Under the pieces are notes generated by a model. That model saw only the letters and a list, made by a program, of their open reading frames with translations. It had not been told where the DNA came from and did no database searches. Both the position numbers and the translations under genes were made by a program. Shown piece by piece: positions 340 to 28,784 of a stretch of 28,784 nucleotides of DNA (position 1 is its first letter; each line of letters begins with the position of its first letter). Source of the DNA: Bugula neritina (lineage: Eukaryota > Animalia > Bryozoa). The stretch spans positions 47,376 through 76,159 of the forward strand of contig CAXIUT010000138.1 in NCBI GenBank assembly GCA_964035545.1, given 5' to 3'.

Positions 340-1149
340 ATGAAGTTTTTTACTGATTCAAAATATTATTTGAATATTCCTAGATATTAATTTTAGTTAT
401 ATATAACAAAATTATATAATAAAGAATAGAGACCTTAAATTCGACATGTGATACCTACCTTTAATAACAGTTTTGTTTTTATTTTTAAATATAATTAAGC
501 TCGTAATTTTATGGTCCATACTGATTCAAAAGGAAATATTATTTGGATTATGAATCTTAAATTTAACATGTATAAAGTTGAACTCTTAGATGATAAAATT
601 ATTATTATTCATCATTCGAATGATAAAGCATTTTATAGATATGATCTTAAATCAGAAATCATTAATCTAGAAAAACAATCATCAATATAAATACTAAATC
701 CTAATCTTTAAATCATTTCTACAACTGTTTTCAACGAGTCTAAAATATTTTGCTTCCAATCTTATACCTAATAATCAATGAAGTTAAAATACTATCATTA
801 TCATAATCTCGTTAATAATAAAAAACCTATTCTCTAGTGGTAATTTGATTTTAATATTTTTAATATGCATCGCTATCAATAAGAATTTGATATTTTTAAA
901 GTTAATAATCACTCCAAAATAGGATGGGTCAGAAAAAATAATATATGTAAATGTTGCTAAAGATTAACTTTCTATTTCTTTTAACTTGATAAATAATTCA
1001 AAGGAAAATTCAGCAGCATAAAAATAAAGAAATATCCTAAATATTTTAATTCTATTTTCGGTTAATAAAATCAAATTTTTTTATATTATTAATATCAACT
1101 AAAGTCAGATTCATACATTATCATAATATCATAAACATATATATCAGAA
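340..1149 (+). CDS. Hypothetical protein, possibly beta-propeller-like; both ends uncertain
   Basis: With TAR=Glu, ATG340 opens a TGA-free frame (MKFFTDSKYY...HTDSKGNIIW...FYRYDL...) that runs in frame into the hydrolase ATG at 1150. A single extra T in the run at 979-982 would instead end it at TGA 987-989. Confidence 0.45.
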
Positions 1150-2241
1150 ATGAATTCCAAACTTGACCCATACTAAAAATATTTCAAACTTTCTCCCAAA
1201 CAAATTAAAAAAATGATAGATTCAGCATAACAAAACAAACACAAAAGTCCCAACCCACAAGGAAATCACATCTTCCCATAAATCAACTTCACACCTTTTA
1301 ACATCTTCAACGAAGAAGGAACTATCACCAAACTAACCACATATCGATATCCAGTCAAAAACCAACCACCAAAAGCAATCATTCTCATGTTCCATGGCTT
1401 GAACTCTCACATGGGGCATGGCGCCCATCTCGCATATGCTTTCGCATAACATGGGTTTTAAACTGTTGGATTCGACCATCGAGGATTCGGACAATCTTAA
1501 GGTTAACCAGGATTTGTCAAGAATTTGCAGTTTCATATTAATGATTGCCTGAAATGGGTTTAAAAAATGAGATAAATGTATAAAGACATGCCTTTTTTTT
1601 GTTTAGGATTGTCTATGGGAGGACTAGCGAGCTACTATTTAACACTTACTCACTCACATCTATTTGAAGGAGCTATTTTGATGGCTCCTGCTCTAAAAAA
1701 TCAAGTAAGCTCTTTTCTTGTTGGATTATCATCTGGTCTGCATTCTCTACTACCTTAAAAAACGAAGTTAATAAAACCAGTTTATGGCAAGGCAAGTAGA
1801 AATCCATAGATAACGGACTTTGTTCAAAAGGATATTTACTCTTATTCAGGAAGAGTTAACTTATCAACAACAACTTTTTTAACTAAAACAATGGACAGAA
1901 GTCCTTAAACTTTTGTTAACTATCGATGCCCATTTCTAATCATTCAAGGAGGTTTAGATAAACTAGTTAATCCATTAGTAGCCTTTGAACTGTTTCAACA
2001 TAGTCCTCTATCTGAATAGGACAAAGATATTCTATTCTATGAAGAAATGTGGCATGATATCTGGCATTAACCTTAAATAGAATAAATTATTGGCAAAATT
2101 ATAAAATGGGTTGATAAAAGAATGGAAATTAATCTTAAAAAATAACATAAAAAATAAAAGAAAGAAAATCATCATAAAGAAAAGTAATAACATAATCATA
2201 AATAAAAGAAAAAATAAATAAACGAACAATAAAGATAATGA
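1150..2241 (+). CDS. Alpha/beta-hydrolase, monoacylglycerol lipase/lysophospholipase-like (Hydrolase_4)
   Basis: Motifs: FHGLNSH, GFDHRGFGQSEG, nucleophile GLSMGG, IIQGGLDKLV (catalytic Asp), MWHDIWHEPE (catalytic His). Continuous with TAR=Glu; TGA at 2239-2241. Confidence 0.92.
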
Positions 2242-2346
2242 TTTCTGCCAATATATCTTTTCTACTATCTCTTAAAGATAAGTTCTTTTTATTTAAAATT
2301 TCTAGTTATTTTTAATTAGATTGATTATTTTTAATTCATAAAAAAA

Positions 2347-4059
2347 TCAGGATTTAGCCATCATTTATTTAAACCCTTCAACAAACATTTCCATTTCTTA
2401 ATTATTTCTAAATTTCAATTGAACATCAATCGGATCTGACACCTTTCTTGAAATAACTCCTTTCATATTTACTATATCATTCTCAACTTAAAGTTTGATA
2501 TGAGATGGTATTAATAATTGTTTTGAAATTGAATTAGAATCTCTTTTGCCGATATTAAGATACATTTTCCAACTTCTTAGCTAATCTTTTATTTATATTT
2601 TTTTCTCACTATTACTTTCAGTATATTCAGACAGTTTTTTCTATATTGATAACATCTATGAACTTGATTCTTTCATAATAATCTACTTTTTCGACTGATT
2701 TTATTTTTTAATCATTCTTTTTATCAAACTTACAATTCTTTTATTGACCTCTCCATTTATTTTAACTTTAGTTTATCCTCGAAAATAGTATTACTCAGTC
2801 TGTTGATTAAAATACCTAACAATTGGCACTTATATCTAATAGATCGTTTCAAAGTTAATTTTTTTGTAAAACATATCATTAAGAATTTATAATATTGATA
2901 TTCTTTCTTCAGGATTTTTAATAAATATTTTTTTAAGTAAATTAACTACCATTTCATTTTAAATATCAAAATATGATACCTATTTCTCTCGAATATGCTG
3001 CAAAATAAAATAAGTGCTACTCCCATCAAAAGGAAATTCTCTAGTATATAGATAATACATCAATACACCTTCATATAAATAAATATACCTAAAACATAAA
3101 ATAAATACCTAAAGACCAAATATCGCTCTTCGAATAATACTTCAAATCGAATAGTTCGCCATCACGACGTCTTATCATCTACGGTGATATGTAGTGCTTT
3201 GAACCGATATATTCCTTGCTTTCGATCAGAGGATCCTCGAGATTGCTTTTTTGTTGGTATAAATTCGAGTTAAATATCTAAAAAGAACCAAAATCTATCA
3301 ATTTTAACCGATATTCATCATCAACTACGAAATTTTAAGCCTGAATAATAGTGCTAATACCTTTATATCTCTATGAGAAACTCCTTGACTTTGCAAATAC
3401 CTCACAATTGAAACAATTTGTGCACAATAATACTTCAATATTTCCTATCTACGATAAAACAAATAATCCCTTTCATAAACCAATCCTAAAACTCTTAATA
3501 ACCCTCCATTTCTTCCCCACTACATTAACATATGTAATTATTTTCCTGTTTTTTATGATTTTATGCCATAATCTATGAGTTTTATTATTCCAGGATGTTT
3601 CAAATTAGACAAAATTTATACTTCTCTTTTGAAATCTTGCTATATCTATTAACTATTTTTACTATTGTTAGGAGCAATAATTGTTTTAAGTGCATATAAT
3701 TATCTTTGTGATGATTATTTATTTTGCTAAGTTTTAATTTTGAATTAATTCTGATTTTTGGCGACCAAATCTACTGTTTTCCCTTAAATACCATTCTGTT
3801 ACTACTTTTACTCATATAAAGTGGTTTCTTTCAAATATTTACATTATTTTTATTCTACCTACTACCTACCCTCAACAATAAAACTTCTATCGTCTTGCTG
3901 TTAATTCAAATAATCTTTTTACTCCCAACTTCTCTATTCCTCTTCCTCCTTCTGATTTTCAATTTTTTAGACCAAGTAGACATCTGAAGTAGCCCCTTTT
4001 CCAATAAAATTAATTTTTCTATATATTCCGCTTTTCAACTTTACTGTTATTCTCTCCAT
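2347..4059 (-). CDS. Ser/Thr protein kinase, AGC/PDK1-like; introns 3341-3360 and 3069-3108
   Basis: Motifs: IGKGATSDV, YALK, HRDIK|AENF, LIDFG, YISPEM, DIWSLG|VLMY, FPF. Removing 20+40 nt restores subdomains VIb and IX. About 550 aa; stop TGA at 2347-2349. Subfamily assignment is tentative. Confidence 0.88.
3069..3108 (-). other. Two abutting 20-nt GT-AG introns (3089-3108, 3069-3088) or one 40-nt intron with an internal AG/GT
   Basis: GTATTTATTTTATGTTTTAG|GTATATTTATTTATATGAAG. All 40 nt must be removed to give DIWSLGVLMYYLYT. Confidence 0.85.
3341..3360 (-). other. 20-nt spliceosomal intron GTATTAGCACTATTATTCAG
   Basis: Interrupts the catalytic loop; removal gives HRDIK-AEN and restores the frame. 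Confidence 0.9.
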
Positions 4060-13658: not shown

Positions 13659-15026
13659 TCAATGTTCTATTGAAGATTCAATTATACTTTTTTGAGTAGT
13701 TTCCTTTACTTTTACTTTAATTCTTTTACTCAACTTATCTGTCCAAGTTATCTGTTTCTATTTCCAAGATTTATGATGCTCTTCTCTGACATGTAATTCA
13801 AGCAATTCTAGTTTACGAAGACGACGATTAATCCTTTATGCCAAATCTTCAAAACATTCATAATTGTTAAATTAATGCCTTCATAAATATAAATATACCA
13901 AGCCTTTATAATCAACGAAGAAAGACCAGTAAATTTACAAAGCTATATTGTAAATTATTCCTATAATAATATTTTATTTACCATTTATCCTGAATAAAAA
14001 GCAAAAAACCCTTGATTAAGTAAAAATTACTTTGACTTGATTAATAATCTTTTACCAACTATCATATTATGATACTTACTCTATATTTATAAAAAAGCAA
14101 TACAGCAGCTACCTAAATAAACAATTACCCTATATTTATACATAAATACATCTAAATTCAACCTGATATACGCTATTTAAATGACATTTTACAGCTATTG
14201 TTAATTCGATAGTTACTCTAACTTTATCAATCAATTTACGCCTTTATTTATATATTTTTACACTAAATGATTGAATATTTACTGTGTTGATGATAGTCAA
14301 ATGCGATATTCTTCTTTTTTCTTCATTTATAACCTGATTTAATTTAGAACTAATATCATGATAACCATATTGCCTAATCTATAAACTTTTTACCTCAGCC
14401 TCTTCAGCTAAACGCTCAAAAAGCTTCCTCTACAAAGGCTATATATGAATATCTATCTTTTCAAGCTATTTTTTATATTATGAAAGAGGATCATCTCTAA
14501 GTGCCTCTAATCGATATTTATTAGTCTGACTAAGTTTTTCTTATAAATTGATGATTTATTTTCCTTGAATATTAGGTAAATTATTTTTATTTTTGTAAAT
14601 ATTTTCAATAACGTTGAGATCAGATTCATTCAAACCACTAGAATAGGCATCTTATATGAATTTTTACCTTCTTTTTAAAACTGATTAAAAGAGCTTATTT
14701 TGTATTGATTCAAATTTAAGGATATATTTCCTTATTTACTATGATCTATTTTGAAGCAAAGTTGTTATCGATCTCAATTTAGATCTAGTTTCACATGAAG
14801 AATGTTTAAGAAATGACTAACATTACTTATCATTACAAAATAATGCATTTCCATTGCAACTTGAACTAGAACATAAATTAACAATTTAGTGTTTTGAAGG
14901 GCATTTCAAAACAGGATGAATTATTTTGAATTTTTATTCGATTTATTGCTTCTGCTAGATTTCATATATTTTTGATTTTTATTGTTTGACTGGTTTGTTG
15001 CTATCTTTGGCTGTACAAGTTCCCAT
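13659..15026 (-). CDS. Hypothetical protein with MGTC N-terminus, Cys/His Zn-finger-like segment and LRR-like C-terminus; up to ~10 tiny introns
   Basis: ATG15026, CPSKH...CSSSSC...FCNDKEC...HSSC. Predicted introns: 14263-14282, 14218-14239, 14130-14149, 14081-14103, 14059-14079, 14036-14055, 14011-14030, 13990-14009, 13961-13981, 13879-13898. Splicing gives one frame to TGA 13659-13661. Confidence 0.7.
13961..14103 (-). other. Array of six tiny GT-AG introns (23, 21, 20, 20, 20, 21 nt) separated by 1-, 3-, 5-, 1- and 8-nt microexons
   Basis: Every unit begins GT and ends AG with the window-typical length. The spacers A, TTG, TCAAA, G and GATAAATG join in frame to IVKGEM. Confidence 0.7.
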
Positions 15027-22712: not shown

Positions 22713-25700
22713 AGGAAGTTTTTAGTTCTCAGATCTTTGTATACTACGACGAATACTAGGTAGTTAATGATGACTCTTTTATCTCTTTTTTCCTCATTAC
22801 GTGATTCTTGATATTATACTTAAACAACTTTTTCAGAAGGAATCTATTGATAAACTCTTTCTTATTTATTTTATTGATTATTTATGATGACCTGTTCATC
22901 TTTCTTTTTATAAAATTTATTATCTTCTTCTTAAATAGGTTGTAACTTAATTATTTTTTTCTCTTATTTTATTTATTTTTATTACTTTACTTCAATTGGA
23001 TTTTAACTGGCCTATTTTGAGACAACTTTTACTTCAGATACTTTATTTTCCATCTTTGTTTACTAATATATCTAAATTATATCTTGATGACGTTATTCAT
23101 TATAGTTATTATTATCTTGTTCAGTAATAGGAATCATATTTTGTTATTTTTGATTTTATTATTTCGGAACAGATCCAAATACTTTTAAAATCTTTTAATT
23201 TTCAGGTTATTTTATTGTTTATTTTTATTCAGAGTTCTTTTCTTGGTGCTATAATATAGCTGTCTAAGGAAGAGAGGTCTATTCTATCTTTTTATCTTTT
23301 TAACTTTATTAAATCTCATTATTGTCCTTCTCTTTTTACATAATATCTTTATTTTAGTCAACTTCTTCTTTCTTATTTTCTGTTATTATGATTTATTATT
23401 CAACTTTGATATTGTCTTTAATTTATTCAACTATTTAACGATTATATTATTCTTGATTTTATGTATTAACAGTAGGTTATGGTATGGGAATTAGTTCAGA
23501 TTATGTTTTTTAAATAACAATTTGATTTTCTTACCTTTTCTAAACCTACTAAATCTTTTATTCTCTATTTTATCTTGTTTATTTGATTCTATAATTATCT
23601 ATTTCAACTTTATTTAATTTTGCCTATTACTCAGTGTTTGATTTTTATTCATTATCTTCAACCTTTGTATCTTGAATTGTTCTTTATTCTATTTTTGTTT
23701 ATTAAACTATTTATTCAACATCTTTTTCTCCAATTTTTTACACAACAGATATTTATTTATCATTTTTCTAAGATTAATGGCTTTTTTATGATTAATTTTC
23801 CTTTATATTTTCTTAAATATCGATATTTCTCGGATTATAATCAACTTATTTAAGAAATCCTTTTTCTATTTAAATTTATAACTAAATTGTATTTTAATAT
23901 TAAACAGGATTATTAATTTATTATCTTTTTTCAACAATTTCATTGGATATTTAGTCAGATTTTATGTCTAAATTCTATTGCTTTTATTCAACTACAACAT
24001 TTACTATTTCTTTGCTTTTAGAAATTTACTATTAATTATTGTTTTCAATCACATTTTCTATCTATTCTTTTTCATTCTATTTTTAGACAATTTACTCTTT
24101 TTATTCAACTGGAATTGTCTCTTAGAGCTTATCTTCAGAATATTATTTAACTATTTATTCTTTTTATTCTTCTTAAACTTTTTCATCAGCATTCTCTTAA
24201 ACATCTTTTTCTTCAACAATTTTTTCTTCAACATTTTTATCAATTACTATTCCTTATTCTTTTTAACAAGATTAATCGTTTTAATTTGATATTTACTGTT
24301 ATTAAATTTTGTTTTCAATAATTTAAACTGTCTATTATTCTTCTTTATCATCTTTTTACTCAACAATTAACTTCTATTCAGGTTTAATTTAAATTTCTAT
24401 TTTATTTAAAATCTATTAAATAATCTATTTCGATATTTATTCTTGTAGTTCATTCTTTTATTCAACTTTCTACTCTACAACTTACTTCTAAATTGTTTAT
24501 TAATTTTTATATTCAATATTTTCTGAAGGAATAACTACATTTTATTCTTCTAATTTTTCCTTAGTTTTATCAGCTTTATTTTATTCAAACTAAACTTTAG
24601 TCTCTATCTCTATCTAATTTTACTCTTTAACAGGTTTATTTTAAATTTATAGCTCTACTATTTCTTTATGATCATTTTATTATTTAACAGATTAAATTAC
24701 TTTTTAATGAATCACCTAATTTTCTCTTTTAATCTCTTCAATTTATTTATTTTTATCTGTTTCAAGAGGAACATTCTAGTTGATTTATTATATCTCATCT
24801 ACTTTCTATTCCAATTTATCTTTTCCTTATTCAATCAATATTTTATCTTAAATAATCTATTAAATCAATTGTTATTGAGTTGTTTACTGAGCTCTTTCAT
24901 TCTCTGTTTACTCTTTAACTGGAGCGACTTTACTATCATCTTTTTCTTTAGATATTAAATTATTATTTTATATTATCTATGATTTCTATTTTTACTATCT
25001 ATCTTCATCTTACTAACATGCATTTTTTTATACTTGTTAATTTTCTTACTTCTCTTATATTTATTATTTCGGCACTTATTTTATTTTTTATTCAACTATT
25101 TCAAGTTATTCCTTAATTTTTTATTCTTTTTTCATTTCTTTTAAATTTATTACATTTATTATTCCTTTATATTTGAGTCCTCAATTTATTTTATTTCTTA
25201 TTTTATCTATTGTTTGTCTAAATTATCTTATTTTTCTTATTTTTCTTATTTATTTTATTTTATATTTCTAAAATTTAAACTTATTCCTATTTTTGTTCCA
25301 ACTTAGTTTATTCTTCTATTTATTTCATTTATTCATTTTTACTTTAAAGATATTCCTTTGCACTTTCATCCTATTTCACTTACTCATTCACTTTTTCAAC
25401 TTATTTATCTATATAATCTTCTTTCACAATTTATTTATCTTATTTTTAAATTTATTGAACTTATCCATTAATATTTTCTCTTGATATATTTATTTCATTC
25501 TTTTTTAAATCTTATCTTTCTTAATTATCTGATTTATCTGATTTTTCTTATTCCTGAGCTTATTTTAATTATTTTTCTGTTTATTCAACTTCTCTTTTTT
25601 CATTTGTACTTTCCTTTTAAACTTATTTAATTTCATTTTAATCTATCTTTTAAACAAAATTCTTTTAGTTTACTAAATGTTCAATTTATTTTACCTGTAG

Positions 25701-26680
25701 ATATTCTTATTATTTTTACTACTTTTACTCTTCTTTAGCTTATTATTCAGCTTATTTTACTTATTATTCTGCTTTTACCTCTTACTTAGCTTATTCTGTT
25801 TATTTATTGATATTTTCTTATTATTTTTACTACTTTTACTCTTCTTTAGCTTATTATTCAGCTTATTATACTTATTATTCTGCTTTTACCTCTTACTTAG
25901 CTTATTCTGTTTATTTATTGATATTTTCTTATTATTTTTACTACTTTTACTCTTCTTTAACTTACTTTTCAGTCTTTTAATATTATTATTTTATATTTTC
26001 CTGCTATGTAAATTATTATTCAACTTATTACTTTTCTTCTTTTTTATTCTTCATTTATTTTTACAATTATACTATATATTATCCTCCGTTTTCTTTTTAA
26101 GTTTCATTTTAATTATTTATTTGAACTTATTTTTATTCTATTTATTTTTATTTCTTTTCTATTTATTAAATTGTTTCTTTTTTAATTTCTTCTTATTATT
26201 TTAATTTCTATTCTTTATCTTCGACAGTCGACCGATTATAGATTATATAATATCATTATTTTAATCTTCATCTTCTACATTTACACTACTTCTCATTAAA
26301 TCTTCAACTCTTACACTTTAGAAAATAGGAATCTCTTCACTAATCTGATGATTTTCTCCATCATTTTCATTCTGATAAGTTCCCAATAATGATACATCTG
26401 ATTGTAGAACATTCTTCTAATTGCCTTATTCTTTCTTAGAAAATGCATTTTAGTCATTATTTGTAGTTTATTCTTCTTTTTTATCATTTTCTTTTTCATT
26501 ATTAATCTTTTACAATTGTTGATTATTGTCCATATTAATTTTATTTCCAAACTAAGGCTATTCAGTCAAAGATCCAATATCATAAGAATTTCTCCCAGAT
26601 AAGATACTGTTTCTTCTATCATCAATACTATCATCATCGTCATCATAGACAGCTTGGCCATTCTCTTAGTCACTATCCAT
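22713..26680 (-). CDS. Very large Glu/Lys-rich low-complexity protein, 3'-truncated at the internal telomere
   Basis: ATG26680 (MDSDEENGQAVYDDDDD), >1300 codons dominated by TAA/TAG/GAA, with three apparent 1-nt slips (~26240, ~25260, ~25140). No stop before the telomere tract. Confidence 0.7.
25704..25959 (-). repeat. Coding tandem repeat, 111-bp unit (37 aa), ~2.3 copies
   Basis: TTCTTATTATTTTTACTAC recurs at 25704, 25815 and 25926. The unit encodes AKEEEKEEKEEENINKETEEAKEEVKAEEEV(E/K)EAEEE. Confidence 0.9.
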
Positions 26681-28690: not shown

Positions 28691-28784
28691 GGGGTTGGGG
28701 TTGGGGTTGGGGTTGGGGTTGGGGTTGGGGTTGGGGTTGGGGTTGGGGTTGGGGTTGGGGTTGGGGTTGGGGGTTGGGGTTGGG
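28691..28784. repeat. Right telomere, (GGGGTT)n
   Basis: 94 bp of repeat to the end of the window, with one G5 variant. Confidence 0.98.

Follow-up and report, generated by a model that had tools for sequence, protein, structure and literature searches.

How can a coding sequence run through a stretch of DNA in which candidate introns follow one another so closely that hardly a codon fits between them? The question is raised by a gene on the minus strand (15026-13659) of a 28,784-nucleotide stretch, hereafter called the window, from the assembly filed under Bugula neritina (GCA_964035545.1). In the middle of this gene, 14 units of 20-23 nt, each starting with GT and ending with AG, form an unbroken chain of 322 nt (14282-13961, minus strand), and a fifteenth unit stands alone further downstream (13898-13879). 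From the features of the sequence described below, we conclude that the 14 units are probably spliceosomal mini-introns, stacked in mid-gene and spliced out separately, with the isolated unit as a fifteenth of the same kind. With all 15 units spliced, the gene would comprise 352 codons, TAA and TAG being read as sense codons.

The chain emerged from a search that imposed GT..AG ends, a length of 19-23 nt and spacers of no more than 8 nt, and nothing else. Nine of the 14 units are exactly 20 nt long, while the other five measure 21-23 nt. The 13 spacers have lengths of 1, 2, 1, 2, 1, 2, 1, 5, 1, 3, 5, 1 and 8 nt, 33 nt in total, and read T, GC, A, CT, C, AT, G, CTGCT, A, TTG, TCAAA, G and GATAAATG. 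Joined in frame they encode the 11 residues CTHAAIVKGEM. The stack therefore holds six candidate exons of 1 nt and three of 2 nt. A spacer of zero length, with AG directly followed by GT, is absent from the stack, all 13 spacers being 1-8 nt long. Note that the spacers among the first eight units alternate strictly (1, 2, 1, 2, 1, 2, 1), and that the 14 units fall into intron phases 0 and 1 only, seven each, and never into phase 2. Part of this arrangement had been recognized in an initial annotation, made from the sequence alone, which described a stack of six GT..AG units at 14103-13961 on the minus strand (23, 21, 20, 20, 20 and 21 nt, separated by A, TTG, TCAAA, G and GATAAATG) together with four tiny introns flanking it (units 1, 3, 7 and 15 in the list below). 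All ten elements are present exactly as described, and the six stacked units are real and beyond chance. The stack was incomplete, however, as the chain comprises 14 units, and the peptide of the stack reads CTHAAIVKGEM instead of the proposed FRWELFIEVAA-IVKGEM. The parts of the gene are given here in the direction of reading; A15 stands for an A at position 15 of a unit.

14283-15026, minus strand: exon 1, 744 nt, from the ATG at 15026-15024 (MGTCTAKDS...) to ...RRISHLTIINT, ending at a codon boundary.
14263-14282, minus strand: unit 1, 20 nt, with GTA, A15 and TAG; followed by the 1-nt spacer T (14262).
14242-14261, minus strand: unit 2, 20 nt, with GTA, A15 and AAG; exon in the initial annotation; followed by the spacer GC (14241-14240).
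14218-14239, minus strand: unit 3, 22 nt, with A at position 15 and at -6; interior substitution at 14229 in DNA run X1; followed by the spacer A (14217).
14195-14216, minus strand: unit 4, 22 nt, with A15; exon in the initial annotation; interior substitution at 14200 in runs X1 and X3; followed by the spacer CT (14194-14193).
14173-14192, minus strand: unit 5, 20 nt, strict motif; exon in the initial annotation; followed by the spacer C (14172).
14152-14171, minus strand: unit 6, 20 nt, strict motif; exon in the initial annotation; followed by the spacer AT (14151-14150).
14130-14149, minus strand: unit 7, 20 nt, strict motif; followed by the spacer G (14129).
14109-14128, minus strand: unit 8, 20 nt, strict motif; exon in the initial annotation; followed by the spacer CTGCT (14108-14104).
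14081-14103, minus strand: unit 9, 23 nt in the window; DNA runs X1-X3 have one T fewer, which shortens the unit to 22 nt and places an A at position 15; followed by the spacer A (14080).
14059-14079, minus strand: unit 10, 21 nt, with A15; followed by the spacer TTG (14058-14056).
14036-14055, minus strand: unit 11, 20 nt, strict motif; followed by the spacer TCAAA (14035-14031).
14011-14030, minus strand: unit 12, 20 nt in the window and, in DNA runs X1-X3, 21 nt with A15 kept; followed by the spacer G (14010).
13990-14009, minus strand: unit 13, 20 nt, the only unit starting with GTT, with A15; followed by the spacer GATAAATG (13989-13982).
13961-13981, minus strand: unit 14, 21 nt, with A at position 15.
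13899-13960, minus strand: 62-nt exon, EEFTIELCKFTGLSSLIIKAW, with its last codon split.
13879-13898, minus strand: unit 15, an isolated 20-nt candidate intron with the strict motif.
13659-13878, minus strand: last exon, HEFNNYECFEDLAERINRRLRKLELLELHVREEHH...IEH, with the stop TGA at 13661-13659.

Chains of this size do not arise by shuffling. When the 143-nt segment with the six units first described was shuffled with its dinucleotides preserved, none of 5000 shuffles reached six chained units, the longest chain being five, observed twice. Dinucleotide shuffles of the complete 322-nt stretch reached no more than six units, and this in only 5 of 5000 cases. For 165 kb of ciliate DNA, the sample underlying the genome statistics throughout, Markov shuffling produced six-unit chains at a rate of 0.1 per data set and never a longer one. 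In addition, a span of 350 nt accommodates ten strict 20-nt motifs, compared with at most three in shuffles. Tilings of the observed size, which the initial annotation had considered worth comparing with a shuffled background, are thus not reached in shuffled sequence.

Chains alone are no proof of introns, however, because the same search picked up a 23-nt minisatellite with about 74 copies (locus L024, contig C290 of G000, 945-2645, plus strand), whose unit, approximately GTAGTCATTAGTACTATCAACTA, tiles as GT..AG by accident. This chain of 74 units was rejected as an intron stack, since it is an ordinary minisatellite, apparently outside any clear coding frame. Could the stack in our gene likewise be a degenerate minisatellite, or a chance tiling in AT-rich DNA, with GT at the start and AG at the end by mere luck? 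This possibility is close to refuted. Shuffles never exceed six units, Tandem Repeats Finder (score 30) reports no repeat in the stack and only two trivial rows outside it, and identity between the interiors of the units (14 unconstrained positions) amounts to 0.41, practically the 0.38-0.39 expected from composition. Moreover, the search did not select for GTA or A15, and yet both are enriched in the units, as detailed below.

The window starts with CCCCAA repeats (1-40) and ends with GGGGTT repeats (28745-28784) and therefore represents an entire minichromosome of 28.8 kb from telomere to telomere. We take it to be a macronuclear minichromosome of a peritrich ciliate. In the 216-Mb assembly, this minichromosome has been scaffolded into contig C147, where it is joined to other pieces of the contig via a run of 200 N; locus L015 ends in N. 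The small contigs of the assembly are built alike, with about 30% GC and C4A2 ends. In contrast, the very large contigs have 33-41% GC and carry kinase genes without TAA or TAG, which indicates that they stem from another organism using the standard code. In the window, TGA is the sole stop codon, while TAA and TAG are sense codons that account for 4.0% and 2.7%, respectively, of the codons in long open frames. A TAA (3338-3340, minus strand) in a kinase gene occupies the position of the E in the catalytic-loop motif HRDxKxEN (HRDIK-A-E-N), which directly supports TAA as a glutamate codon and fits the peritrich code.

The DNA of the locus is real, as it is also present in contigs of three public DNA runs (X1-X3) from two studies. 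Compared with the window, these contigs carry one additional base behind 14017 and one base fewer at 14091. Both sites are homopolymers, situated in units 12 and 9, and the differences may be assembly errors in the window or real polymorphism. Substitutions within the stack affect 14200 (X1 and X3) and 14229 (X1), inside units 4 and 3. Further unlisted differences exist, and the eight listed indels of 1-6 nt between the assembly and X1-X3 are all intergenic or lie inside units 9 and 12, with none in exons. An internal eliminated sequence was considered and rejected, as the stretch is found in a telomere-capped macronuclear minichromosome and in the contigs of three DNA runs.

Other sequences with a superficial likeness to the stack were encountered. 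A purine-rich coding repeat of about 111 nt in the window (25589-25965, minus strand) is rich in GTAA and AAG and mimics motif clusters; it forms no chain. The large standard-code contigs C1 and C2 of G000 contain many 21-22-bp minisatellites (e.g., C1:5017775-5018532 and C1:553500-554285) with the unit GTA-N11-A-N3-AG plus 1-2 nt. A pattern search for such units in the window's own assembly gave 4166 matches, compared with 246 for the reversed pattern, a difference that a few long arrays may explain. The matches listed in a search of the same genome for the strict stack pattern came only from minisatellites of the large standard-code contigs.

What do introns look like in this ciliate? Neither open-frame junctions nor a codon-usage score proved suitable for defining an intron class. 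Both suffered from noise, since this organism has a single stop codon, TGA, and only a weak codon bias. An expectation-maximization (EM) mixture model of the 20-nt candidates was discarded as well, since it drifted to a class defined by strand composition. A census of GTA..HAG candidates (H, not G) with a GC content of no more than 0.3, from which the stack and one minisatellite were masked, revealed a peak at 20 nt, with 128 candidates compared with roughly 75 at other lengths. An A at -6, which in this class is position 15, is enriched at 20 nt only (86 of 128, compared with a proportion of about 0.47 at other lengths). These figures fit the presence of about 50 true 20-nt introns in the 165 kb, nearly all with A at position 15. 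Two cases in an interrupted kinase gene of the same window, both verified by homology, serve as controls.

3341-3360, minus strand: kinase intron, 20 nt, HRDIK / intron / A-E(TAA)-NFVV; verified by local tblastn against four intronless paralogous kinases and by direct reading.
3069-3108, minus strand: kinase twin, 40 nt, consisting of two 20-nt GT..AG units with 0 nt between them; DIWSLG / 40 nt / VLMYY, kinase subdomain IX.

The 20-nt kinase intron shows the same features as the 20-nt candidate class. In the kinase twin, the +1 shift of the reading frame fits removal of 40 nt, not of 20 nt.

The units of the stack bear the same hallmarks. As GT and AG ends were imposed by the chain search, only their number in a row is informative, while GTA and A15 were not selected for. 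Thirteen of the 14 units start with GTA, compared with a background frequency of about 0.28 for A after GT (binomial estimate about 7e-7). An A at position 15 is found in 13 of 14 units, compared with about 0.45 in the background (binomial estimate about 3e-4), and in all 14 when unit 9 is taken in the form of runs X1-X3, which is shorter by one T. An A at -6 is present in all nine 20-nt units, and a G at -3 in none of the 14. Constant signals around interiors that resemble each other no more than by chance are the signature of selection acting on splice signals, unlike the pattern of a duplication decaying inside one large intron. The proposal of the initial annotation that splicing follows a strict definition of intron length fits the constant position of the A, 15 nt from the 5' splice site.

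Further explanations for the units were examined. When ten 20-nt units were compared with 921 candidates in search of introner-like copies, the best matches differed at 2-5 of 20 positions (mean 3.6, compared with 4.4 after shuffling of the interiors). A mobile introner-like family was rejected, as these matches point to a shared consensus and not to near-identical copies. Unit 15 and the second unit of the kinase twin (3069-3088) are identical at 18 of 20 bases; this likeness is not evidence of intron mobility, as about one such pair is expected by chance in some 900 comparisons. A structured non-coding RNA was rejected, as the window has no match in Rfam and the 322 nt fold no better than shuffled sequences (z-score -0.42). 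The local hotspot of intron gain suggested in the initial annotation is plausible, with the restriction that the units have no detectable common ancestry.

In principle, the units could also be removed in one or a few larger pieces. Either the whole 322 nt or a segment such as the 143 nt would then be cut from the first GT to the last AG, and the inner units would be inactive relics of intron duplication or insertion. Excision of a single 322-nt intron is in frame and leads to a stop at codon 341. In addition, the kinase twin loses 40 nt although its first unit lacks A15, such that a longer excision may be possible in this organism. While this is the main competitor of separate splicing, we consider it unlikely. 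In neutral relics, GT, A15 and AG should have been lost at the same pace as the interiors, where identity is by now at chance level, whereas GT (14 of 14), AG (14 of 14) and A15 (13-14 of 14) have been kept at exact spacing. Furthermore, candidate lengths peak sharply at 20 nt, published intron lengths in peritrichs are described as having a narrow distribution (PMC13685798), and with the inner sites intact there would be nothing to keep the spliceosome off them.

The reading frame provides a further line of evidence. The parse was chosen by intron rules alone. When all units are removed, exon 1 joins the best coding frame of the last exon, and the stop is reached at codon 352. Exon 1 has a codon score of 0.125 per codon in its own frame, which is typical of coding sequence, and the last exon scores 0.169 per codon in the chosen frame, compared with -0.43 and -0.02 in the other two. 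Removal of the units of exactly 20 nt only leads to a stop at codon 251; the units of 21-23 nt must therefore go as well. When a single unit with a length not divisible by three is retained, a stop follows at codons 251-335. The frame thus supports removal of these pieces, although it cannot tell how they are removed. The transcript predicted with 14+1 introns would be 309 nt shorter than the genomic sequence and contain TGCACTCATGCTGCTATTGTCAAAGGATAAATG between ...ATCAACACA and GAATAATTTACA..., whereas a single large intron would join the ATCAACACA and GAATAATTTACA flanks directly. For the arrangement of the initial annotation, the product would be shortened by 207 nt.

Does the stretch have to be spliced at all? 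It might be translated through, the gene might be decaying, or exon 1 and the last exon might belong to separate transcripts. Frame 0 is free of TGA throughout the stretch, with a stop at codon 381, and in the pieces tested neither a known homologue nor a Pfam domain was identified for the gene. Still, we judge this very improbable. A run of about 133 codons without TGA has a chance of roughly 9% in AT-rich DNA, as estimated from the TGA frequency, and the unspliced stretch yields codon scores of -0.014 per codon or lower in every frame, compared with 0.12 +/- 0.10 for coding windows, i.e., below the coding range in all frames. If the stretch were translated, the differences of +1 and -1 nt seen in the three DNA data sets would rewrite 25 codons, and in a decaying gene, 70 signal positions would not have stayed intact.

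The initial annotation had combined ten tiny introns (units 1, 3, 7, 9-14 and 15) with exons of normal appearance of 23, 68 and 26 nt (14262-14240, 14217-14150 and 14129-14104). This arrangement is in frame as well, with a stop at codon 386. The joined 117 nt score 0.079 per codon, which is in the coding range, and with TAA and TAG read as E their translation is rich in glutamate, like the rest of the protein. We nevertheless regard such a mixture as quite improbable, because the three supposed exons are fully tiled by units 2, 4, 5, 6 and 8, with spacers of 1-2 nt. Four of these five are perfect 20-nt strict motifs, whereas about 0.035 would be expected in 117 nt (97.6 motifs per 330 kb of shuffled sequence, i.e., about 3e-4 per nt). 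As four strict motifs are very unlikely in 117 nt of true exon, the stack is taken to comprise 14 units. In the pre-mRNA, such motifs would be substrates like the other introns.

Several observations weigh against 14 separately spliced mini-introns. Public sequencing runs were searched for the locus, and the only three found to contain it consist of DNA contigs that span the candidate introns without interruption; a further run, presumed to be RNA (X5), yielded nothing. The spliced junction, searched for with a gap of 0-18 nt to cover both direct joining and the microexon form, had no match in metagenome contigs. Units 10 and 14, both of 21 nt, would stay in frame if retained. The caveat of the initial annotation that a single 143-nt intron gives the same downstream frame stands, and it extends to a single 322-nt intron and to the annotation's own ten-intron arrangement. 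Homologues of the gene were not detected; a DNA search of the assembly matched the gene alone and no paralogues, and ten stop-free pieces of the window had no match in Pfam. Genome-wide, the excess in length is clear at exactly 20 nt only, while five of the 14 stacked units are 21-23 nt long. Neighbouring pairs of units are not enriched either (13 compared with 12.7 in shuffles), from which it follows that stacks are rare, special loci and not a general habit of this genome. Finally, position 15 in the first unit of the kinase twin is occupied by T, the nearest A being found at position 12. This means either that the A15 rule is not absolute or that the 40 nt are excised together. In the second case, the grounds for ruling out long introns in this organism would be weaker, leaving room for excision of the stack as one large intron. 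All in all, tiny introns stacked with exons down to 1 nt, as the initial annotation had envisaged them, are the best-supported explanation, on the strength of statistics and intron hallmarks.

If the 14 units are indeed removed separately, the process can be pictured as follows. Each unit would carry a full set of signals within its 20-23 nt: it would open with GTA, A15 would presumably act as branch point, and the first usable HAG thereafter would mark the 3' end. With this internal ruler, the spliceosome would define each intron as a unit and would not need a real exon alongside. Adjacent units of 20 nt could not hold two spliceosomes at once, and the units would therefore have to be removed one after another. 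Each excision would leave 1-8 nt on the growing upstream exon and expose the next GTA, until the 13 leftovers add up to the 33 nt that specify the 11 residues of the stack. Retention of a unit not divisible by three would shift the frame to an early TGA, and RNA mis-spliced in this way would probably be discarded.

Tiny introns as such are well documented in ciliates and nucleomorphs. Those of Paramecium measure 20-30 nt, those of Stentor and Blepharisma about 15 nt, and those of peritrichs have a narrow length distribution (PMC13685798, PMC9505925). The units described here resemble them in their GT-AG ends, their very narrow length class, their AT-richness and the premature stop that follows upon retention of a unit not divisible by three. 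They differ in that the known introns are separated by ordinary exons, whereas here 14 lie end to end at distances of 1-8 nt. In the literature that could be searched, we found no account of minimal introns following one another at such short distances. Recursive splicing at ratchet points with zero-nucleotide exons is known from Drosophila and vertebrates (10.1101/006163, PMC5126111). It shares with the stack a 3' splice site that abuts a 5' splice site and, if our picture of stepwise removal holds, the regeneration of a 5' splice site in each step; the kinase twin (3108-3069) formally corresponds to such a zero-length exon. However, recursive splicing takes apart introns tens of kilobases long, of which no nucleotide remains in the mRNA, whereas in our gene each step would take out about 20 nt and most steps would leave 1-8 coding nucleotides. 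Microexons of 1 nt or of similarly minute size have been described for APC11 of Arabidopsis (PMC4674806) and CYP621A of Fusarium (PMC12940212). As in these cases, 1-nt exons in the stack would be located between two complete introns and be needed for the frame. Those cases are, however, isolated and flanked by introns of normal size, while the stack would string together six exons of 1 nt and three of 2 nt with minimal introns in between.

Genes of this type will be mis-annotated by gene finders and read aligners that set a lower limit to exon or intron length, and some of the "frameshifts" reported for peritrich genes could be unrecognized mini-introns. Models of splicing assign exons a part in the recognition of splice sites and assume that a spliceosome requires space on either side of an intron. 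The stack, if spliced as proposed, would mean that intron definition works with essentially no exon and that removal is forced to proceed one intron at a time. It is, in our view, about as likely as not that the spliceosome of this peritrich reads introns purely by an internal ruler (GTA, A15 and the next HAG) without any flanking exon. Introns could then pile up, a gene segment could be left in exons of 1-2 nt between introns that are removed singly, and stacks would mark repeated intron gain held by selection on the signals. Provided that the 14 minimal introns are spliced as proposed, the stack would offer a natural system for studying the minimal substrate of the spliceosome, the ruler between 5' splice site and branch point, and the gain of introns.

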